From: Hyaloraphidium curvatum SAG 235-1
Lineage: Eukaryota > Fungi > Monoblepharomycota
Length of the DNA stretch: 64,000 bases
Reading direction: 5' to 3'
NCBI GenBank assembly: GCA_025558095.1
Contig: JAIVFI010000001.1
Coordinates: forward strand, 1,178,001-1,242,000
A program made the translations under genes and the position numbers. Below the pieces are notes generated by a model. The model saw nothing but the letters and a program-made list of their open reading frames with translations. It was not told the origin of the DNA and ran no database searches. Below, piece after piece: positions 3,182 through 44,022 of the stretch. Every line of letters begins with the position of its first letter. The stretch's first letter is position 1.

Positions 3182-6100
3182 TCACTCTACGTCCCTAATC
3201 CTCCTCTTTTTCGCCTTCGTCGTCGTCGTCCGCCGGGTCGACGAGGTTCGCGTGGTGCTCGACCTCGTGATAGTCTGCGACCGCGAGGTCGTTGCGGTTC
3301 TCGACTTCGTGGCTGTCGCAGTGCGGCTGGCTGAGCTGGTGGTCCACAGCGTCGTCGACGTGCGCGTGGAGGTCGGCACCGCGGCCGGCGGCACCGGCAC
3401 CCCGGGCTGGGCGGCGCAGCGCGCGGATGCGCACGTGGTGGCGTTGACCGTGACGTAGTAGTTGGTGTACGAATCCCACACGTTCCGCTTGATGTCGGCA
3501 TAGTCCCCGGCGGGCAGGGCGAGCCCGTTGCGCTGGAACATTCCCACGGGCTTGATGTCGGTCCAGGGGGCGTCGGTTCCCGCGGAACCGAGGGAGCCCG
3601 AGTTGCTCCGGAAGACGATGCGCACGTAAAGAACAGAGCCGTCGAAGTGGTAGACGTCGCCGAAGCCCGCGCGGACCTCGTCCGGGGATGCGACGGCGCG
3701 GAAGGGGTGCACGCAGATGCTCCACCGGGGATCGCAGTAGTTGACATAGGCGGCGATCGAGAACTGCGTGCCGGCGGGGTACGGGAAGGCCAGGACCAGG
3801 TTCGTGTCGGCAGCAAGAACCAAGCCCGCGACGGAGAAGGACGACGGGGTGCCGCCGGCGAAGCGCACGAACCAGCCACCCGTCCCAGCGATCAGCGGGC
3901 CCGTGACCTTGGAGTTGACGCCCACGGCGAGCCCCGTGGCCTCGGTGCGACCAAAGTGGGCCGCCGTCGCGGCCACGGGGCACGGCTTGGTCCCGTCCCA
4001 GTTGCCGTTCATGCAAAGCGACGTGCCGATGGTCGACTGCAGCGGCTGGTCGTACAAGAGGGTGACCGAGGCCGAGGCGTCGCCGGGGCGCTGCGGGCAC
4101 GCGATCACGGCGTCCTTCGGCAGGCCCACGCCGGCGGTCGACACGTTGACGCAGTCGTCGCGGTATTTCCACCATTCGCTGGCCCAGTTGGAGCCCAGCA
4201 TCACCGGCGTGCCGCGCAGGGAGGGCAGGTACGGCGCGTACACGGAACCGTCGGCGTCGAACCAGCTCGCCAGGAGGCCAGAGACGGTGTTGCCCATGGC
4301 GTCGGTCAGCTCGGTGGAGAACTTGACGAGGCGGGGCACGAGCACGTTGTCGTAGGTGATGTTGCGCGTCGCCTGCATCACCTCGGGCACGAACTGGTCC
4401 GAGTGCGTCAGGATCGTCCAGATCGAGTTGTCGGAGCACGAGTTGTACTGGCTGGCGTACACGCACGGGCCGTTCCAGTCCGAGCGGCAGTTGCGGAAAG
4501 TAATGTCGGTGATGATGTGGCGTTGGCCCGTGTCGTACCTGCGAGGCGCGACCTGGTCAGGACGACGGATGTATAGAATGGAACGCCGAAGACTCACCAC
4601 TGCCAGCCGTGGAACTCCCTGAAGAAAACCCAATCACGAGCCGCGCCCCCAGGCGATGTTGGGGCTCGGCGAACCCGCGCGGGGGCACCCCGCGAACCAG
4701 GTCGGCTTGTTGGCCGTGCGGCAGGTGTGCAACACGCCCGTCGCGGACACGGATCCGAAAACGTTGGCGGCCAAGTTAATGTCGTGCAGCTCCATCCTGA
4801 TAATGTCGGAGCGGTCGCCCCAGTTCTGCATGCCGCGGTTGGCAAGGAACACCTTGACGTCCTCTAGCTTGAGCCAGAGCTGCTTCGACCTGTCGCACCA
4901 CGTGTTCCCGGGCACCCCCACGGCGGGATCGGAGCACGTCACATGCGAGTCGGAGCGTCCGGGGGTGTAGGTCAGCGGCGACGCGCCCCAGGTGCCCTTG
5001 TACGTGAGCTGACCGCCGACGTAGACCCCCCCCGCGCTGTTGAACCAGAACCCGGTGCTGTGCGCCGAGTTGCCCCGGAACAGGAGGAACGGCCGGCCCT
5101 GCGGGCTCAGGCCGGTCACGTTGGCGTGCAGCTTGACGGGGCGGGAGAGGGTGGGGAAGGAGAAGCCGGTCCAGCCGCCCGAGGCGGCGTTGCCGAGGAA
5201 CGAGTTGTAAGGGTTGGTGCCGTAGAAAACGCCGGCGGAGATGTCGCTCGGGAGGATGAGGTTGGTGGTGTTCTCGTCGACCCAGGGGGTGTACTGGTCG
5301 TAGAAGACGCCGAGGAACGGGGTGACCGAGGGTCCGATCGAGTGCACGTGCGCGCCAAAGTTCCAGTGGAATTCGTTGTTTTCTGAGGTCGGGGAAGTCA
5401 GGTCGGTGGCACGGAATAAAAGGCGCTGTTTCGGGCACCCACCTTCCACGCCGTCCTCAATGAAGTAGCAGTGCCCGGTGGCGTCGTAGGCCGTGTTCTC
5501 GTGCACCCGGGCAAAGTGCGTGCCGTGCACGGCGAAGCACCGGAAGAAGGACCTGTGTACCGAGCAATCGCTGGCCGTGGCGCCGATCGACTTGTTCTGC
5601 TGCGAGCCCATCATGTGGAAATGCAGCGGGTACCGCCCCAGGACGTTCGTTTGTCCCATGCGGTAAAGCTCGACCCCGGAGACGTTGGCCGACGCGGCGG
5701 TGCCCGTCACCAAGACGTGGCCGCCGAAGCCCGTCGGGAACTTGTCCTCGCAGGGGTAGCTGGAGCCGTAGCTGTCCGTGCAGGCGAGTGGGGTGGTGTC
5801 GGTCGGCTCAGAGGTAGCCTCGTTGCCCTGGATGAGGACGTCGCGCGACAGGAGGGCGACCTCGGCCTGGTACTCGGGTCTGTCGGCGGCGCAGAGTCAC
5901 GGGGCGCAGCGCACACGGGGCAGCCGGTGAATGCCAGTCAGAGATGGAAGCGCGCACGGGCGGACTGTCGAACCCACCCTCCATAGTGCGTGAAGTTCAG
6001 AGGCTCGGTCAGGCGCAGGGCGCCTACGTTGGGCCCCAACGTGGTCGTGAAAACCCCAGAAATGGTCCGCACCTCGTTGCGGTGGAAGTCACGGGCGTCC

Positions 6101-34481: not shown

Positions 34482-37400
34482 TCACGTTGCCGAGAACCCC
34501 CACCCGGGCTTGACGCCCTTGCGCTGTCCCGCCCCGCCGTACTGCATGTCCCACTTCCTGAGCTCCGCGAGGCTCTCCATATCGTCCGTTAGCGACGCCG
34601 GGATCTCCTTGAGCGCGATCTCAAAGTGCTCCTTTGTCAGCAGCCGCTGCGATCCGCCGGGGCTCTGCGCCTGTGCCGTGCCGTCGCCCACGACCGAGCT
34701 CCACTCGTCGATCTCGTCCATCTCCTTGAGGATCCGCGCGCGGAGCTCCGGGTCCTCGGCGGCAGGGTCCGTGAGCGGCGGCAGGCCGTGCCTCGCTTCG
34801 CGGACGACGTTCTCCTTGACGCTGGCCAGCGCCGCCGAGATGCAGAGGTTGCGGAGGTCGGAGCCGCTGTAGAGCTCCGTGCGCTTGGCGAGGTCCACCA
34901 GCGAGATTGAATCGTGTAGCTGCTCGTCCTTGAGGTGGACCCCGAGGATCTTGGCCCGCGACTCCTCGTTCGGCAGGTCCACTAAACGAGCTGTTCAGAA
35001 ACGAACAACAGAGGACGGACACGACGCAGCCCACCGAGGATCCGCCGCGGCATCCGCCTCAGGATCGCGTCGTCCAGGTCGAACGGCCGGTTCGTCGCGG
35101 CCATGATGATGACGCCGCTGTTTCCGCCGCCGATCCCGTCCCACTCGCCCATGAACTCGTTCATGACCTCCCTCCGGCTGGCAAAGGTGTCGCCCTTCCG
35201 GCGGCCAAACAGCGCGTCGACTGCGGAAGCGACATGGATCAGACTCGTCGACAGGCAGGCCGATCGGACGCCGACCTTCGTCAATGAACACGACGCAGGG
35301 CGCCAGCTTCCTGGCCAGGGTGAAGACGGCCTTGACGTTCTTCTCGCCCTCGCCGACGTACTTGTCGAACACGTCCGACAGGGCCACGTTCATGAAGCGC
35401 GCGCCGCCCGAGCGGGCGACGCACTTGGCGAGGAAGGTCTTTCCGGTGCCGGGCTGTGGGAGGAGATCACAATGGAATGTCAGACAACGGACTTGCCCGA
35501 CGGCGGCGCCGACCACCCACCGGCCCGAAAAGCAGCACCCCGGTGAAGCTCGACTTCTGCAATATCCCGTGCGAAAACAGCTTGGGCCTCAGCAGCGGCA
35601 GCGTCACCAGCGTCTGCAGCGCCAGCTTGGTCGACGGCGGCAGGATCAGGTCCGAAAAGCCGACGCCGATGGCCGAGGGATCCACCACGCACGAGAGCAG
35701 CTTCTTCTCGTACGTGTTGGGCTTGTACCCGCGCTCCTGGAGGAAATCCCTGATGGCCCCCTGGTCGTTCCGCCCCTCCTCCGCTCCCGAAGGAGGGTAC
35801 GCCTGCTGCTGCGCCGCCCGCGGCGGGGAAACCTGCGCCTCCTCCCTGTTGTCCACGGTGTCCGCCAAGGCGGCCAGCCCGCCGTCCCCCCGCCCCCCCG
35901 CCGCGCCGCGCGATTCGAGGTGCGCCTCGGCCTCGCGCCGGTGCCGCGCGGCGATCCGCGCTTCGTCCTTCTGCTCCCTGTACTCGGGGTCGTTCATCCG
36001 CTCGTTCTCGATGCCCTCCATCAGGTGGCGCAGGGACAGGGTGGCGGGGACCGAGACGGGCGCGGCGCCGCCGAGCAGCGCCTCGTGCCGCAGCCGCACC
36101 CCGTTGGCGTTGTTGACCGTCTCGCGGATGAAGCTCGGTTCCCACAGCTTGGCCCTGAGCGCGCCCAGGAACGCCGCGAGCTCCGCGTCCGTGGGCTGCA
36201 GGTCCCCGGACCCGCCCGAGACGAGCTCGGCCCACCGCTCGGCGCACATGTCCGCCGTCCGCGAGCCCACGAACGATGCGACGTCGTCCCACGCGCACCC
36301 GAACCGCTGGAACCCGCGCGCCAGCAGCGCGTCCTCGGCCCCGGTCCACCCCCTGCTCCCCTGCGCCCCGCGGAACACCTTGGCCGCGTCGGCGCCCCCG
36401 AGCAGCGCGCCGAGCGGGTGCGCCTCGAGCGGCCGGCCGCGGTCCGAGCACTCGATCGCCGTGGAGCGCCAGTTGATCTCGGCGACGCGGCGCTGCTGGT
36501 CCAGCCGCATGGCGCGCTCCCATTCCAGGAAGCGCGATTCGACGGCGGCGGGGGAGTCGTCGTCGCTGCGCGGGATCGAGGTCGTGGTGTTGGATGTGAG
36601 GGGGTGCTTGGGGAGCGGCGGGGGAGAGAGGTTGATGGTCGCCACGGGGTTGCTTTTGGAGGAGAGGATGTGGCGGTAGGGGAGCAGGCGGAGCTCGTCG
36701 TCGGCAAAGCCGATGCCGGCCTTGGGCGTCTTTTCCCCGGCGAGGATGGCGCGCAGCTCCTCGGCGCCTTCGATGGCCGCCTTCTGCGCCTTGTACTCGT
36801 CCTCGGAGCTGACGGCCGGGTCGATGGCGGAGTAGATCACGGAGGGGCAGGCGCCGGCGGTCAGGACCACGGGCAGACCGGCGCCCCGGAGGCCGTCGAC
36901 GCAGCCCAGGACCGATTCCAGTATCTGCGGGCCGTACGGCCGCGAGCGCTCCGTGTCAAAGTCGTTCAGGTCCTTGAGGTAGACGACCAGGGGAGCTTTC
37001 GAGCCCCTGACGCGGGCGAAGCGGGCCAGGTGCGAGGCCAGCGCCGCGCAGGCCGCGGACAGATCGCCCGCCGCGGCGGCCGCGGATTCACCGGGAGGCA
37101 CGGCATCTTGGCTGTCGTGCCTATGGGGCGCCCGGTCGCCCTGGCGGTACCCACGGTGAGACGGGGCCGGCACCGCCGCCCTCTCGGGCCTGGGGACGTC
37201 GTCCGCGGGGGCCACCCTGCCCCCGCTCCACGACATGTCGGAGGCGGGCGGCTCCATGTCCACGTCCGGCTCGTCGTCGGGGTGCGCGTCGTCGAACGAG
37301 CTGCTGTAGCCGCCGTACCGGTCGTCCTCGTCCTCCTCGCCCTCCTCGTACGGCTCGCTGGCGGCGGTGCCGTCGTCATGGGCCGCGATACGCCGGTCGT

Positions 37401-38070
37401 CGTAGTGCGAGAGGCGGAACACGCGGGCGCCGAACGTGAGCGGGCGCGGGCGGAAGGCCGGGTCGTCCAGGGCCGCCTCGTGGGAGCCCCGCCCGGGCTC
37501 GTGCACGTAGTCATACAGGTCCTTCAGATCGAGGGACAGAAAATCGGCGCCCGCGGCATGGGCCGTCCGCCGCACCAGGTCCTCCAGGTAGTACACGGCG
37601 CCGGGGTGCGGGCACGCCACGACCAGCGCGTTTGCGGGCGGCGGCGGGCTCCGGCCGGGGTCGAATGCCGAGAGCAGCTTGACGTGCAGCCGCTGCGCGG
37701 CGTGCTCGTCGACGTACGGCTGCGGGAAAGAAGGCGGCGCGCCGTCGTCGAACGCCGCGTACTTCGGGGAGAAGAACGGGTCGCCTCCGCCGGGCGGCAC
37801 CGCACCCGATGGCTCTTTCGCGCCCTTCGCCGCTGCGTTCGATGTCCGGAACAGCGCGTAGCCGCGGATCTGCCGCGCATTCGGAGACATCGCGATCGGC
37901 CGGCCCTGTGGGAGTGAGGGGCAAGCCGAGAATGAACGGCCGGAAACGCAGCCGGATCGGGCCGCAGCGGCCGAAAGAGCCGCGATGCGGAGAGTCCATC
38001 GCGTCTGCGGGAAGATCCGGACGACCGAATCGGCCGCGAGGGCCCGAACGGGGCCGGAGACGCGACGCAT
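34482..38070 (-). CDS. Msp1/ATAD1-like (meiotic clade) AAA ATPase with long N-terminal extension and embedded Myb/SANT domain
   Basis: YEKKLLSCVVDP, LPLLRPKLFSHGIL, GVLLFGP|PGTGKT, YVGEGEKNVKAVFTLARKLAPCVVFIDE, NEFMGEWDG, AATNRPFDLDDAILRR, YSGSDLRNLC, LRKWDMQYG. Arg/Ser-rich mitochondrial-presequence-like N-terminus. Three introns in the AAA domain. Confidence 0.9.
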
Positions 38071-38183
38071 CTACGCTCAATGTGGCGGCACCTCGCACCC
38101 GGCTCCCAGCCAGAGGAGGCGCTCGCAGCTATCGAAAGAATGCCCTGATCGCGGTTTCCTTGTCCCAATACATTGATGCGAAG

Positions 38184-39362
38184 CTACCATGTAACCATTG
38201 AGATAGCATTCGAGGCACCTTGCTTGACGTAGGAAGCCGCCGCCGACGCTACACCCCAGAAGGTCCTTCTCGCCTTAACGGTCGCTTCGGCCCTTGCTCT
38301 AAAGATACGTTGTAGCTCCTTAAGTTGCTTGGAGATATCCTCCTTGTTCTTGATCATTGAGCGGATTTCCTTGAGCTTCTCCTCAAGCTCGTCCTTTTCC
38401 TTCTTCTTCTTGGCCTTCTTTGACTCGGAGCACCACCAAGACCTGAGATTGGGAATCTGCTTCTCGATCTCTTGAATCCGTGCTTCCAGCTCTTCAGGGG
38501 AAGCTCCTCCATCGCGCAACAGAGCATCCAGCTCATCGATCTTGGTGCTAAGCACGTTGATAGCGTCCTCAAGTTGCGTTCGCGTAAGCACTTGGATTGG
38601 CAACTGATCAACATCAAGGACTTGTTCAGAGGGCCGTTTGAGCCACTCCTGCATTCTTTCCATCCGGTCCTCCCCAGTCGGAATGATGATGTCGGGCTCG
38701 AAAGCTTTGACAAGGTTCTCCATAAACTCCGTGCTTCGTTTCTCTTGTTTCGGTGTGTTGAGCTTCGTGAGGACAACAGCCAATTCGGTCTGGTGCCTGA
38801 ACAAGGCCAAAATGATCTGCAGGTACTCCTCAGCTTCCGGGAGCATTCTGTCCGTTCCATCCGTCACGAAGCAAATTTTGGAGATGCGTTTCGTGCTCTT
38901 TCTTAGGAAATCCACGGTTCGCTGGATCAGTTGCTCACGCACGCCCTCTTCGACGTTTGTGTCAAGAAAACCAGGCATGTCTGCGATGTAGTACGGCCCT
39001 AAAGATGAAACAACGACGTCGCATCAATGTTCTCAACTGGAGCAGCAATCAACTTACGTCCGTCGATGATGATGGCTTGCATGTTGGCTTCGGCCGTGTC
39101 CGACTTTCCCGTGTTCCTAGTCGGATCCTCTTCCCGCAGGAGATGAATCAGGGACGTCTTGCCGCTTCCGGTCATGCCAAAAAGCAGAGTGCACTCGGGC
39201 ACCGGGAACTCGGATGAAGGAACTGTTGGATTGGTCAGCGCGAAGCGACAAAGCAGTATCGGCACTCCCACCCGGACCGCCTCGACTGCCTCGCTCGGAT
39301 GTGGCGCCGTCCTCATCTGCATGAAGCCATTGGGGCCGCGAAGCACGCGTACGCAATCGCAT
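38184..39362 (-). CDS. P-loop GTPase (TRAFAC, AIG1/GIMAP/septin-like G domain) with C-terminal coiled coil
   Basis: G1 LLFGMTGSGKTS; G2-like SDT; G3 IADMPGFLDT after splicing intron 38999-39057 (GTAAGT...TTTAG); G4-like VVLTKL; heptad-rich C-terminus. Start uncertain, with a probable first intron ~39223-39271. Confidence 0.85.
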
Positions 39363-39641
39363 AGAGAGACCCTGTGAGATCTTCGGGCGCGGCACAGCGG
39401 AAGGCGCGACATACGGATCGGGGCACCGCTGAGCATGGTCTCAAGAAACCGTGCCGAACGACGGCTCCGTTAAGATCCCCAGGCGCGTTTTCTGCAATTG
39501 TGCGCCGATGATGGCGGCGCAGGCGTTTGCTCGTTCGAAGTCGCGGCATTCAGGGTCCGGCTGAGATGCACACACCCCGGGTTGAGTGCCGAGACGGCCG
39601 TGCTGCAAGCACAGTCCCAGACAAGCGCCCACAGGCGCCAC

Positions 39642-41494
39642 ATGCCGCCGCGGCTCTCGGGCAAAGCCTCCGCTGCTGCTGCAGTGCTTTGCGCCGTGTC
39701 ATCTTTCGTCGAGTGTGTGCCGCTCAGCGAGATGTCAGCCGTGTGTCGCGACACGGTGCTGCTTGTGGGAGATGGACACCGATCCCTGAAGGATCTCGTC
39801 TGCTCTCTACGCGGAGAAGAGTCAGAGAGTGTGGACGGTCGACACGATGACGAGTTCGGTCCTAAAGAGGACCATGTTATCCTCAATAGTCGGTGCATTT
39901 GGCCAGTAAAGCGCTCTTCATCTGACGATGACATAGGAAACGCGGTGAACATCGTCACCCACGGAATTGAGGGATCCATCGCTCGTGTTGATGAGCTGAT
40001 GAAATATCTGCGGGCGACGCCACGGATCATTACTCGGGTTTACTTTTGCCAAGACCTTTCACACCGCCTGAGTTCCTCGACTGAAGCGAATGTCGGCGCT
40101 TTGCTTGGATTGTTCCGAAGCCGTGTGCATTTTGGTCTCATCATTGCCGGGGTCACGAGCCAGAAGGCACGGACACGGGCTGAGGAACTTGCACAAACGC
40201 TTCGAAGCAAGTTCGATCCCGAAGAAACCATCTTCGCTGGCGAAGACACCATCGAAGAGCTGAGAAGTGCTCTGATGGTAGAGCCGACTCGAATGATGCT
40301 CGTGGCCAATCTCCCGTCGCTCTCGCTCGAGAACACCACCAGCCTCAAGGTCCGCATCGAGCAGCTGGAGAAGGAGAGGGACCTGCTCGCGAAGGAGCTG
40401 CGAATTGCAAAAGACGAGGTGTTCAAATTGAAGCTGGCCCACCCGGTGGACACCTCAGGCGTTGATGTCGACTTGGCACCAGAGCTGAGGGAGCTGCTGG
40501 GCCATGTGGTCGGCATGCGTGCTGTCGGTGCCTCCTGTCTTGCCACGACGAATCCTTCCTGACAGAAAGTGCTCCTCCAACAGCTCAAGAGCGAAGTTCA
40601 GAACTTCTACGTTGCACAGAAAGTGAACGCCCGGCGCCGCACAATGGGAGTTCCCGTCAAGACTCCTCATCCGTCGATTCTCTTTCGCGGAAATCCTGGA
40701 ACGGGGAAAACTAAAGTTGCACGCATTATCAGGGACGTTCTTGTCAAGGTATGATCACAGATTTTTGCCTTTAGTACATTGGCAACTGAGCGATGGCTAT
40801 TAGGCAGGCATACTGCCACCCAATGCGCCGTTCCAAGAGTCATCTCGTGATGATCTTGTCGGCAAGTACATTGGACACACGGAAGCTAATATGGCCATGA
40901 TATTCGAACGCTTGCGCAACGGAGGCGTCCTCTTCATCGATGAAGCCTACCGACTCGTTCAAGCAGATTCCGATAAAGACTTCGGGAAGATTGCTCTTGA
41001 AGCAATCATGACGCAGATGACGAAATCGGACAACAAGATATCATTCATCTTTGCAGGTGATGGCTCGCCGGGGAGACCTGATTGGATGACATCTGACACC
41101 TCCTGCAGGCTACCCGAAAGAGATGGCTCGGATGCTTGATTCCAACCCCGGAATATCGTCAAGGATCTCTTACACCTTCGATTTCGAGGACTACAGTCCC
41201 GCCGACCTGGCAAAGATCTTCCAGCTACACGCCCAGGAGCAAGGCTTCGTCCTCGACGAAGGGACCCTTCCGCCTTCGCGCCTGGCCCAGTGTTTCGAGC
41301 AACACTTTTCGGGAATTCAACGAAGCAGATCGAACGGTCGCCTGGCGGAGCGCCTCTTCCAGCGGACCCAACTTGTGCAGACGAACCGGATTGCTGGATT
41401 GGGCGACGATACGAGCGCCGAGGTCATGCAGACGATCACTCTCAGCGATGTAGAAACCGCCGCGAAGGAGTTGGGAGAGACGGGGAACATTTAG
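39642..41494 (+). CDS. Degenerate GTPase domain + coiled coil + CbbX/SpoVK/EccA-clade AAA+ ATPase fusion
   Basis: AAA motifs: HVVGM, ILFRGNPGTGKTKVARII, SSRDDLVGKYIGHTE, GGVLFIDEAYRL, DFGKIALEAI, FAGYPKEMARMLDSNPGISSRISYTFDFEDYS, SNGR. Introns 39889-39936, 40524-40565, 40749-40803 and 41057-41108 keep frame. The N-terminus aligns by eye to the neighbouring GTPase. Confidence 0.85.
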
Positions 41495-41719
41495 CTCGGC
41501 AGGTGTGTCGTGGGATGGTAATGAACGGCACGACCAGGTGTCCGCGACGGCCCGTGATCCAACAACAAAACTGGCATGCCATTTGCCCGTGACAGAGACA
41601 CCAAACCGCGGAATAGTCCGCGGGAATCAAACCACCTTGCCGCCTCCGGCTGGCGTCAATCGGCCGCCTCGCCGGCGCCTCCGCCGTCCACCAGGAAGTT
41701 CCCCTCCAAATCGAGTCCA

Positions 41720-42380
41720 TCACAGCTCCCTCTGCGGCGTCTGCGTCAGCAGCAGCCCGAACCGCTTCTTGAGGGTGACCCGGTGCCGCGAGTACTTGTC
41801 GTCGGGCGAGAACCGTGCTGCAGACGGAAAGAAGCGAGGTCAGCACCACTCCTCAAACCCATCCCGCCCTCCTCCGCAATCCGGCAGAATGTCTCAACGC
41901 TACTATCCAATCACAGATATGGAGCGCATCTGTAGATTAGCGATACGGAGATGTTTGCTCTCTGCCGCTTAGAGTGGCCCCCGCCGCCATCCCGCCCCGA
42001 AACCCGTAGGAAACGGGGCGGTCGGTGGGGGCTAAATGGCGGCATTCCGGTCCGTCCGCATTCCCACGGGGAGGGCTCAAGATGTCGGCCGGAGGCGGTC
42101 GCCGCCACCTCCTCCGGCCGGCACCCGGGAAGGCCGCGGGCAGCGGTCGTTCCGCACAACCACCTCCACCCATCGCAGCCCCACCACGCTTCCCCACCCT
42201 CCACACGCCCCGTTGCGCCAATCAACTGACCAGGATGCGCGGATTTGGTAGCGTTCCCGTCCGGCGTCAGTTTCTGTCCGGGCAGTCAGCTCCTTCCTCC
42301 GGGGCGAAAGGGCGGCGCGAACCGACCTTGAGCGTGTAGACGCGCCGCCCGTTGGCGTCGAGGTAGTACATCAGGTGCAT
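41720..42380 (-). CDS. NOP10: H/ACA snoRNP subunit Nop10 (64 aa; exons 42380-42327, 42273-42231, 41817-41720)
   Basis: Spliced translation [64 protein letters not shown]. Canonical GT-AG introns of 53 and 413 nt. Missing from the ORF track. Confidence 0.97.
41887..42045 (-). ncRNA. Intronic box H/ACA snoRNA in NOP10 intron 2
   Basis: Hairpin 1 (TGCCGC/GCGGCA lower stem, GCCCCC/GGGGGC upper stem); box H AGAGCA (41961-41956); hairpin 2 (CTC/GAG; CTAATC-ACAGAT/ATCTGT-GATTGG); ACA (41892-41890) plus 3 nt. Pocket-to-box spacings are 15 and 14 nt. Confidence 0.85.
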
Positions 42381-42525
42381 CGCGGCGGGAAGGGGGGGAG
42401 CGTCGACTGTTTTTCGCTCGTCAAGTTCGCCAAGGGCTTTCGGAAGGAGCAGCTAGCGCAGGCACCGGCCGGTGGGGGTCATTCGGCTTCGATCGGGCAG
42501 CAACGCCTCCGTTTCCAGCGCATCG

Positions 42526-44022
42526 ATGTCCTCCGCGCCCGACCTCCCCGTGCTGGACGCGTCCGACGCGTTCGCCGCGCTCCCGCCCGAACCCAACCTC
42601 GACACTCTGGGGGATATCCGCCGCCGCCTCCCCACCGCTCCGTGCCTCGTCGTGCTCGACGACGACCCGACCGGCACCCAGACGTGCCACGACATCTCCG
42701 TTCTGACCTCGTGGTCGGTCGACGAGCTCGAGCGGGAGCTGCGCGAGGGCACCCCCGGCTTCTTCGTCCTGACGAACTCGCGCGCGTTCCCCCCGGAACC
42801 CGCACGCGAGCTGATGCGGGGTATCTGCGCCAACCTCCGCGCCGCCGCCTCCCGCGCGGACAGGGAGGTCCGCGTCGTGCTCAGGGGGGACTCGACCCTG
42901 CGGGGGCACTTTCCCCTCGAACCCGAGGCGGCGGAGGAGGGCCTGGGCGTGCGGCACGACGGCTGGGTGCTGCTCCCGTTCTTTCTGCAGGGAAACAGGT
43001 ACACGATCGGGGACGTGCATTACCTGGGGAAGGAGGGGAAGCTGGTGCCCGTGGGGCAGACCGAGTTTGCAAAGGACAAGGCGTTCGGGTACCGCTCCTC
43101 CGACCTGAAGGACTACGTGGAGGAGAAAACCGGGGGCGCGATCAAGGCGTCGGAGGTGGCCACGATTTCGATCGACGACCTGCGGCTCGGCGGCCCGGGA
43201 AAGGTCGCCTCGATCCTGTCCTCCCTCCCCCCGCGGACCGTAATTGCGGTCAACGCGGCCTCGGAGCAGGACGTCCGCATCTTCGTGCTCGGCCTGCTGG
43301 ACTGCGAGCAGCGCACGGGGAAGAGGTTCCTTTACCGCACCGCGGCGGCGTTCGTTTCCGCGCGGCTGGGGATGCCGCCAAAGAAGCCCGTCGGGCCGGC
43401 CGAGTTTGGCCTGCGGCCGGAGCAGGCGGCTGCGGGGGGCCTCATCGTTGTCGGCAGCTACGTGCCAACCACAACCTCCCAAGTAGAGGCGCTGACGAGG
43501 GACAACGATGAATTGGAGGTGATCACGCTCGACGTCGGGCAGATCGCCGCGCTCGACCCCGACTCGCCCGAACTCGCCGCCCTGGTCGACTCGGTATCCC
43601 AGCGCGCCCGGGACCGCATCATCGACGGCCGGGACTGCCTCATCCTCACCAGCCGCTCCCTCGTCTCGGGCCCCGACGCCGCCTCCAGCCTCGCCATCGG
43701 CTCCCAGGCCAGCGCCGCGCTGGTCCGCATCGTGCGCGGGATCGCCGTGCGTCCGCGGTATCTGGTGGCCAAGGGCGGGATCACCTCGAGCGATCTGGCC
43801 ACCAAGGCGCTGGGGATGCGCAGGGCGGCGGTGGTGGGGCAGGCGGCGCCGGGGATCCCGCTGTGGAGGGGGGACGCGGGGAGCCTCTGGCCCGGGGTGC
43901 CGTACATTGTTTTTCCGGGCAACACGGGGGGGACGGAGACGCTGAGGGAGGTGTACGAGAAGTGGAAGGCCGGCGCAGAGGGTGTGCCGGAGCCGCGGGC
44001 GCCGTTCTCGAAAGGGCGGTGA
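42526..44022 (+). CDS. Four-carbon acid sugar kinase family (DUF1537 / SBD_N + NBD_C)
   Basis: LVVLDDDPTGTQTCHD, LTNSRA, RGDSTLRGHF, TEFAKDKAFGY, GLIVVGSYV, AKGGITSSD, IVFPGNTG. Confidence 0.9.
   Translation: MSSAPDLPVLDASDAFAALPPEPNLDTLGDIRRRLPTAPCLVVLDDDPTGTQTCHDISVLTSWSVDELERELREGTPGFFVLTNSRAFPPEPARELMRGICANLRAAASRADREVRVVLRGDSTLRGHFPLEPEAAEEGLGVRHDGWVLLPFFLQGNRYTIGDVHYLGKEGKLVPVGQTEFAKDKAFGYRSSDLKDYVEEKTGGAIKASEVATISIDDLRLGGPGKVASILSSLPPRTVIAVNAASEQDVRIFVLGLLDCEQRTGKRFLYRTAAAFVSARLGMPPKKPVGPAEFGLRPEQAAAGGLIVVGSYVPTTTSQVEALTRDNDELEVITLDVGQIAALDPDSPELAALVDSVSQRARDRIIDGRDCLILTSRSLVSGPDAASSLAIGSQASAALVRIVRGIAVRPRYLVAKGGITSSDLATKALGMRRAAVVGQAAPGIPLWRGDAGSLWPGVPYIVFPGNTGGTETLREVYEKWKAGAEGVPEPRAPFSKGR

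Follow-up and report, generated by a model that had tools for sequence, protein, structure and literature searches.

Why would a fungal AAA+ motor carry, at its N terminus, a domain related to the GTPase encoded head to head beside it? The question is raised by a gene pair in a 64,000-nucleotide stretch of the genome of Hyaloraphidium curvatum SAG 235-1, a non-photosynthetic fungus of the Monoblepharomycota (contig JAIVFI010000001.1, positions 1,178,001 to 1,242,000 of the forward strand). This whole stretch is referred to as the window, and its numbering is used for the pair. Gene A encodes a putative GIMAP/Toc-like GTPase. Gene B encodes a protein in which a candidate nucleotide-dead copy of the A G domain precedes a CbbX/EccA-type AAA+ module. 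The explanation that we favor, at about even chances, is that B docks on A via this pseudo-GTPase domain and then remodels or regulates A. The evidence comes from the paralogy of the two domains, a predicted complex between them and the conservation of the pair in a second organism.

A divergent, transcribed gene pair

The features of the pair are as follows.

38184..39549, minus strand: gene A (P0001, hypothetical protein DFJ74DRAFT_649776), annotated model 402 amino acids, RNA isoform 348 amino acids
38184-38186, minus strand: gene A stop codon
38187..38267, minus strand: C-terminal TFWG motif of A and Ala/Ser/Gly tail
38268..38594, minus strand: coiled-coil/helical region of A, residues about 268-376, with a conserved SW(W) turn
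38610..39217, minus strand: G domain of A (P0001 residues 80-262), with G1 GMTGSGKT, switch I RNTGKSDT, G3 DMPG and G4 TKLN
Within 38610..39217, minus strand: conserved-box-like loop of A, DGTDRMLPE, with R182
38998-39056, 39223-39271 and 39317-39414, minus strand: gene A introns supported by RNA (cDNA contig)
39436 (RNA isoform) or 39549 (annotated P0001), minus strand: gene A start ATG
39437..39641: shared divergent promoter/5′ region, across which the cDNA contig is unbroken
39642..41494, plus strand: gene B (P0002 = KAI9034523.1, 545 amino acids)
39642-39888, 39937-40523, 40584-40748, 40804-41056 and 41109-41494, plus strand: gene B exons
39747..40325, plus strand: putative pseudo-GTPase domain of B, residues 36-212, paralogue of the A G domain
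40326..40439, plus strand: linker helix/coiled coil of B, residues 213-250
40485..41491, plus strand: CbbX/EccA-type AAA+ module of B, residues about 266-545
40689-40712, plus strand: Walker A of B, GNPGTGKT
40927-40944, plus strand: Walker B of B, VLFIDE

A 3276-nucleotide record from one public run maps to 38143-41818 with seven segments skipped, all of them ended by GT..AG (CT..AC for the three minus-strand ones). The removal of these segments shows that the record is complementary DNA (cDNA), and A and B are both expressed and spliced, as one contig spans both. Because the record is unbroken between the genes, the 5′ ends of the A and B transcripts abut or overlap; a contig spanning A and B is no proof of one transcript running across both genes. 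The gap between the start codons is 92-205 bp, depending on the A start used. The original prediction had described two divergent genes, the second with GTPase-like and AAA+ parts fused. The genes lie where it placed them, the locus is transcribed, and the two parts of B fall in one in-frame, spliced transcript rather than in separate ones.

Translation of the spliced window exons of gene B reproduces P0002 exactly, and its entry KAI9034523.1 is annotated as [quoted passage not shown] P0002 was retrieved by the first exon of gene B, and P0001, from H. curvatum, was the single database protein retrieved by the last exon of gene A. The annotated P0001 retains a 49-nucleotide intron (39223-39271, minus strand) that the cDNA contig removes. 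Its removal shifts the start of the A open reading frame (ORF) from 39549 to 39436 and the length from 402 to 348 amino acids, the sequence being the same from P0001 residue 77 on. The difference reflects either alternative splicing or a wrongly annotated A N-terminus. In the searches below, P0001 and P0002 represented the spliced genes and the remaining loci were queried one exon each; window exons were joined only for the P0002 identity check, ORF finding and counts of GC content at third codon positions (GC3).

The N-terminal domain of gene B is related to the G domain of gene A

BLASTP aligned A with the N-terminal domain of B over 104 amino acids without gaps (25% identity, E 9e-12), and hhalign of the two sub-families gave 98.1% (E 8.9e-14, 125 columns). 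An exhaustive phmmer search of the B domain against 1.84 billion representative proteins returned five matches, among which were A-like proteins; one of the five, the Ig-repeat protein P0005, was rejected as spurious. The paralogy that had been proposed from alignment by eye is thus borne out. This similarity lies in the C-terminal half of the G domain; the half with the P-loop is matched by position and predicted secondary structure only. No Pfam family matched the N-terminal 262 residues of B.

In the family alignment, the counterpart of GMTGSGKTS of A is VGDGHRS in B, which is two residues shorter, and neither DMPG (G3) nor TKLN (G4) has an equivalent, so the claimed loss of all three motifs from B stands. 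Their loss appears to be ancient, as the dead G1, G3 and G4 are common to both B orthologues (the second is described below). The AlphaFold2 model of the domain keeps the β1-α1 and β4-to-α5 core, with a disordered acidic stretch (residues 62-95) in place of the β2-β3/switch region, and its best fold matches are the G domains of EngB and Rho. The arginine after β4 (R182 in A) is kept in B as R126 and occurs in 7 of the 8 family members. Homology to A, a G-fold core and the lost motifs together mark the domain as a pseudo-GTPase; judged from sequence, it is a nucleotide-dead copy of the A G domain.

In gene A, G1, G3 and a G4-like motif occur on a Ras-like α/β fold, as in TRAFAC-class P-loop GTPases. 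GMTGSGKT, DMPG and TKLN all read as the original prediction quoted them, the DMPG being interrupted by a 59-nucleotide intron and formed by splicing. Whole P0001 passes the Pfam MMR_HSR1 cut-off (32.5 bits against 21.9). The AIG1 family (PF04548) is absent from the 25 best Pfam families listed for P0001, and a whole-genome scan with PF04548 gave no match at the A/B locus and none above the cut-off genome-wide. For the AlphaFold2 model of A (7-row family alignment; predicted local distance difference test (pLDDT) 70-86 at residues 80-260), Foldseek ranked human GIMAP7 first (3zjc, E 9e-8), with weaker matches to immunity-related GTPases (IRG; 4lv5, 1tq6). Language-model features placed A nearest to eukaryotic AIG1/MMR_HSR1 clusters (score 0.94). 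The earlier description of A as AIG1/GIMAP-like therefore stands for fold and language-model features but not at the level of Pfam, where only MMR_HSR1 is reached. A thus has a G domain of the TRAFAC class; its fold and features probably bring it closest to the GIMAP/Toc group (GIMAP7/Toc34), and by its sequence it is not an AIG1 member.

The G4 of A, TKLN (residues 209-212; window 38552-38563), has Asn in place of the guanine-specifying Asp. This Asp is kept in A-like copies elsewhere: TKVD on contig L015, TKAD on contig L016, and TRLD and TQAD in two copies on H. curvatum contig 27. An Asp-to-Asn change in G4 moves Ras-like GTPases and EF-Tu toward xanthine nucleotides. The substituted residue, N212, sits inside the predicted A-B interface.

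Downstream of the A G domain, about 110 helical residues are followed by the conserved TFWG motif and the tail. Tails rich in small residues (52-65% Ala/Gly/Ser/Thr) occur in 4 of 5 A-like proteins. A was rejected as a protein with a transmembrane anchor, since its tail, although made up largely of small residues, has too little hydrophobicity. The best PDB sequence match of the A-family profile is the pore-forming toxin subunit XaxA (E 0.0011; 6gy8 and 6gy6, with YaxA 6ek7), over a helical hairpin around the SW motif (window 38268-38594). It ranked beside GCN4, a tape-measure protein and apolipophorin, so it probably reflects coiled-coil composition, and we set it aside as evidence of pore formation.

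The motor of gene B is of the CbbX/EccA type

Residues 266-545 of B align over their full length with CbbX (3zuh, E 3e-36) and EccA1 (9lur, E 6e-34); values of 1e-35 and 2e-33 were also obtained for these two. The CbbX alignment takes in Walker A and Walker B, the VGKYIGHT pore loop, the arginine of SRI and sensor 2 (NGR). The AAA+ domain is thus complete, and both alignments agree with the CbbX/SpoVK/EccA clade to which the original prediction had assigned it. B scores 58.3 bits against Pfam AAA, and AAA_lid_6 reaches 24.7 bits from the last exon (cut-off 24.3) and 22.0 bits from the whole protein. B is not a red-type Rubisco activase (CbbX proper): the fungus is non-photosynthetic, the motor has a 265-residue N-terminal extension, and the neighbors are an AAA/Myb gene and NOP10, with no Rubisco context.

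H. curvatum encodes a second motor of this type, an ankyrin-coiled coil-CbbX-type AAA+ paralogue (G000:C6:851460-852159) with 47-51% core identity to the AAA+ module of B. Its locus (L018 3768-5834; G000:C6:850267-852333, plus strand) has a GC3 of 0.95, and no A-like neighbor was detected beside it. The ankyrin repeats occupy the position of the B G-like domain, and a coiled coil joins either to the motor. Because the repeats sit at the same place in this second motor, the comparison supports the view that the N-domain of CbbX-type motors here is an exchangeable adaptor.

The gene pair occurs in a second organism

The sole other B-like protein in the representative library, P0003, is encoded on a 60.7-kb Logan contig, L015. 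Here, A-like exons on the minus strand (4001-3056) face the B-like gene on the plus strand (4196-5925). The A-like motifs are intact (GVTGSGKT, DMPGFLDT, TKVD), the B-like P-loop is dead (IADDDEV) and the AAA+ motifs are intact. Three intron positions in B, and that of the A intron preceding DMPGF, are common to L015 and H. curvatum. The A/B pair is 34-50% identical between them, whereas for two housekeeping proteins flanking it on L015 the identity to H. curvatum proteins, encoded on other contigs, is 63% and 81%. This indicates that L015 derives from a relative in which the flanks are non-syntenic, and that the pair diverged faster than its neighbors. The head-to-head arrangement, with an intact A P-loop and a dead B P-loop, thus recurs between different flanks; the original prediction had proposed a cross-species search for the pair.

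Word-indexed searches with the last exon of A and the A-family profile recovered only the H. curvatum proteins P0001 and P0127 and no new members. The same type of search with whole B gave about 2000 mostly unnamed or bacterial CbbX/SpoVK-type proteins, which matched the AAA+ half only. Scans of JGI metagenome contigs (for A motifs and for B AAA+ motifs) and of IMG/VR found no related loci. On these searches, the A/B pair is rare: it occurs in two related organisms, in addition to A-only copies.

The A-only copies in H. curvatum comprise a tandem of two on contig 27 and a single gene on contig 5, and on the metagenome contig L016 an A-like gene adjoins a PQ-loop-like membrane gene. The contig 27 G domains lie on the minus strand (L013 7068-9112; G000:C27:263067-265111). 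The upstream copy combines an intact P-loop (GPRGTGKS) with ADLPG and TQAD, and is without the conserved-box arginine and the coiled coil. Downstream, the motifs read GLAGSGKT, DTPA and TRLD, and are followed by a coiled coil and a 74-residue tail of small residues. The upstream copy ends one base ahead of the start of the downstream copy. The two may belong to a single two-domain gene or to separate genes, and would be an alternative way to pair paralogous G domains. The contig 5 paralogue (P0127; L014 7853-8938; G000:C5:753852-754937, minus strand; GC3 0.72) has an intact P-loop exon (GATGSGKT) and degenerate G3 (DTEG) and G4 (TYNY), and is without the FW motif and the Ala/Ser tail.

A predicted complex pairs the two G domains face to face

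We modeled residues 80-402 of A with residues 30-262 of B using ESMFold2, with GTP and Mg included and family alignments not used as input. The A-B pair had an ipSAE of 0.69 (runs 0.69, 0.73 and 0.68), as compared with 0.02 for the best of three controls, and the interface that the original prediction had proposed to check by modeling is thus predicted. In a calibration set without riding ligands, 51 of 78 solved complexes attained the ipSAE mark used, as did 2 of 108 mismatched pairs. The runs agree on at least 73% of contacts and the partner pLDDT is at least 76.

On A, the interface comprises G95 (P-loop), D109-D118 (switch I), D178-P185 (the R182 loop), K210-N226 (G4 and the next helix), E241-D242 and T377-G380, the TFWG motif also contacting B. 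On B, it comprises G45/R47, S61-D69, Q121-L127 (with R126) and G154-L171. The tightest predicted pairs join B 124-127 with G95, N113, D178 and K210 of A, and the model sets the arginine after β4 (R182 of A, R126 of B) next to the P-loop of the partner. The predicted pairing is that of G-face to G-face, in the style of GIMAP heterodimers; it is in this prediction that the pair resembles dimerization-activated G proteins. Identity at the A interface positions is 64% in the L015 A and 56% in the L016 A, compared with 36-41% elsewhere in the domain. For the paralogues on contigs 27 and 5, which have no B partner, the values are 32% and 19%, without enrichment.

Several points weigh against this docking. 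The B interface shows no enrichment in conserved residues (2 of 10 alignable positions). The complex score is model confidence and not a measurement, and because many solved structures are dimers of G domains, the pass may stem from resemblance within the family or recall of such dimers; an A-A homodimer could score equally well. R182 and R126 may correspond to the interface arginine of GIMAP7 (R103) and Toc33 (R130), a tentative match based on their position between G3 and G4. A-like genes occur without B (contigs 27 and 5, and L016), so A-type proteins can work alone. Lastly, a tree built by maximum likelihood from the 8 G-like domains has no supported branch, and so sets no order of duplication.

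An alternative is that A and B are relics of tandem duplication that share a promoter and do not bind each other. The dead G domain of B would then be a scaffold, an oligomerization or autoinhibitory domain, or a recognizer of another client, for which the contig 27 and contig 5 paralogues are available. Neighboring duplicates are common, 7 of 44 blind neighbor pairs pass the complex test, and the poor conservation of the B interface is as this account would have it. However, the divergent arrangement is kept in the second organism despite different flanks, and conservation of the predicted A interface is confined to the B-partnered orthologue on L015 and to the L016 gene; the H. curvatum paralogues do not share it. 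The complex score is also 0.67 above every control. We consider a pair of non-binding relics unlikely.

Base composition and the role of the pair

The A/B pair has 54-59% GC per kb, compared with 64-73% in the flanks. The original prediction was right about the direction of this difference and overstated its size (~47-48% versus ~77%). GC3 is 0.64 for A and 0.61-0.67 for B, versus 0.89-0.92 for four neighbors, and the L015 pair (0.50-0.57) is likewise below its neighbors (0.62-0.76). For this reason, low GC3 seems to be characteristic of these genes and not a sign that they were imported recently, and we do not favor recent horizontal acquisition as its cause. This argues against a recent foreign origin, and the insertion of the locus between housekeeping genes, as proposed in the original prediction, is conjectural. 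Low GC3, fast divergence and patchy distribution together suggest an accessory rather than a core function.

The pair might serve innate immunity or allorecognition, as the original prediction suggested, or another form of conflict, in which A would be a GIMAP-like effector that assembles on a membrane or invader and B would guard or disarm it. The GIMAP/AIG1-like fold and language-model features of A would fit, as would the low identity of the pair relative to the two flanking housekeeping proteins in the same two organisms, the low GC3 in both and the small, variable and very patchily distributed paralogue family. In prokaryotes, conflict systems that combine AAA+ proteins (MoxR) with effector GTPases of the AIG type have been described (PMC7159879). 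On the other hand, Pfam finds no HET, NACHT, TIR, pore-forming or other immune domain in A or B, and no NACHT, NB-ARC, HET, HeLo or similar domain of fungal NOD-like receptor (NLR)/HET allorecognition in A, B or their orthologues. PADLOC gave only generic P-loop or coiled-coil matches, and we rejected mad8, IetA, LmuB and JetC as defense identities; the mad8 (28.6 bits) and IetA (31 bits) matches are weak and lie on the P-loop/AAA cores. MAD7-MAD8 is described as the ATPase-nuclease module of the MADS system. No virus or mobile-element link was found, and the cDNA shows transcription in an apparently ordinary culture library. A conflict role is doubtful on this balance; it concerns what the pair is for, and is compatible with docking of B on A.

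It is highly improbable that the locus consists of neutral or decaying sequence, for instance a dead foreign insertion with accidental ORFs: its GC is below that of the surroundings and it has almost no homologues in very large protein collections, but transcripts of both genes are seen with their seven canonical introns correctly spliced out, their frames are intact with all AAA+ catalytic motifs present, and orthologues at 34-50% identity retain frames, introns and gene order.

Proposed mechanism

In the explanation that we favor, docking of B on A, the two genes would form a module expressed from the shared divergent promoter region. A would be a dimerization-type GIMAP/Toc-like GTPase that continues into a coiled coil and ends in a flexible C-terminal tail rich in Ala/Ser, and B a CbbX-type AAA+ remodeler whose N-terminal substrate-recognition domain is a dead copy of the G domain of A. 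This dead domain would dock on the nucleotide-binding face of A as a pseudo-homodimer, as GIMAP6 does on GIMAP7, placing R126, the sole conserved-box arginine kept in B, beside the P-loop and switch I of A. Docking would bring A to the hexameric motor, which would hold, reset or disassemble it, possibly by threading the C-terminal tail of A as CbbX threads the RbcL tail. Conjectural in this scheme are the part played by R126, the threading of the tail and the direction of regulation, by which A might be stimulated, blocked or dismantled.

A bolder version, which we regard as a long shot, is a eukaryotic conflict or self-control module. Here, an AAA+ unfoldase would bear a dead decoy of its own effector GTPase, sense the nucleotide state of the effector by pseudo-homodimerization and feed its tail into the pore, so licensing or dismantling a GIMAP-like assembly, and the pair would be inherited and moved as a unit.

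If the G-face docking is real, the pair would be a compact and tractable case of paralogue substrate mimicry as an AAA+ targeting domain, and would extend GIMAP/Toc-like regulatory heterodimers into early-diverging fungi. The reach of the A/B pair is limited by its rarity.

Neighboring genes

The left neighbor (34482-38070, minus strand) encodes a classic-clade AAA ATPase (AAA and AAA_lid_3) that has a long, very GC-rich N-terminal extension with a Myb-like DNA-binding domain (E 5.6e-8). NOP10, expected next to the locus, was found just past B (41759-41887, minus strand) and is convergent with it; the cDNA contig spanning A and B extends to 41818, into the NOP10 match. At 42472-44022 on the plus strand is an intron-less ORF of 516 amino acids with SBD_N (E 1.8e-51) and NBD_C (E 3.1e-34), of the four-carbon acid sugar kinase type, a family that is mostly bacterial.

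Comparison with known systems

Among the systems closest to the A/B pair are the dimerizing receptor GTPases Toc33/Toc34-Toc159 and the GIMAPs. GIMAP6, which neither binds nor hydrolyzes GTP, inhibits GIMAP7 via a G-interface of P-loop, switches and conserved box, and GIMAP2 is activated by GIMAP7 (PMC9111091). The predicted A-B interface uses the same elements as GIMAP6-GIMAP7 (PMC9111091). In GIMAPs, however, the regulator is free-standing, whereas in B it is fused to an AAA+ motor. Moreover, A falls outside Pfam AIG1 by sequence and belongs to a fungal lineage, not to vertebrates or plants.

The motor of B is like those of CbbX, EccA1 and SpoVK, given its full-length alignment, YIGHT pore loop, Walker A and B, arginine finger and sensor 2. 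As with the tetratricopeptide repeat (TPR) domain of EccA, the N-terminal domain of B would select the client. Unlike in CbbX and EccA, this domain is a putative pseudo-GTPase, rather than a TPR domain or absent, and there is no Rubisco or secretion context; CbbX threading of the RbcL tail is only an analogy for A. In the ankyrin-CbbX paralogue, the N-domain differs from that of B and the GC3 is typical for the genome.

In mouse, GMS regulators of the IRG family, which have a degenerate P-loop, restrain their GKS effector paralogues via G-domain contacts. The GMS proteins differ from B in that they retain nucleotide binding and have no motor attached.

Genomic coupling of an AAA+ ATPase to a GIMAP/AIG-like GTPase is shared with the vWA-MoxR “iSTAND” ternary conflict systems (Kaur et al., 2020, PMC7159879). 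Those are prokaryotic, with AAA+ proteins of the MoxR clade, vWA and STAND partners and no pseudo-GTPase fusion (PMC7159879). In the literature searched, we found no description of a pseudo-GTPase regulator and an AAA+ motor fused in one polypeptide. The two principles are already known, namely pseudo-GTPases that regulate active paralogues (GIMAP6/7, IRG GMS/GKS) and AAA+ motors that choose their clients by N-terminal adaptors.

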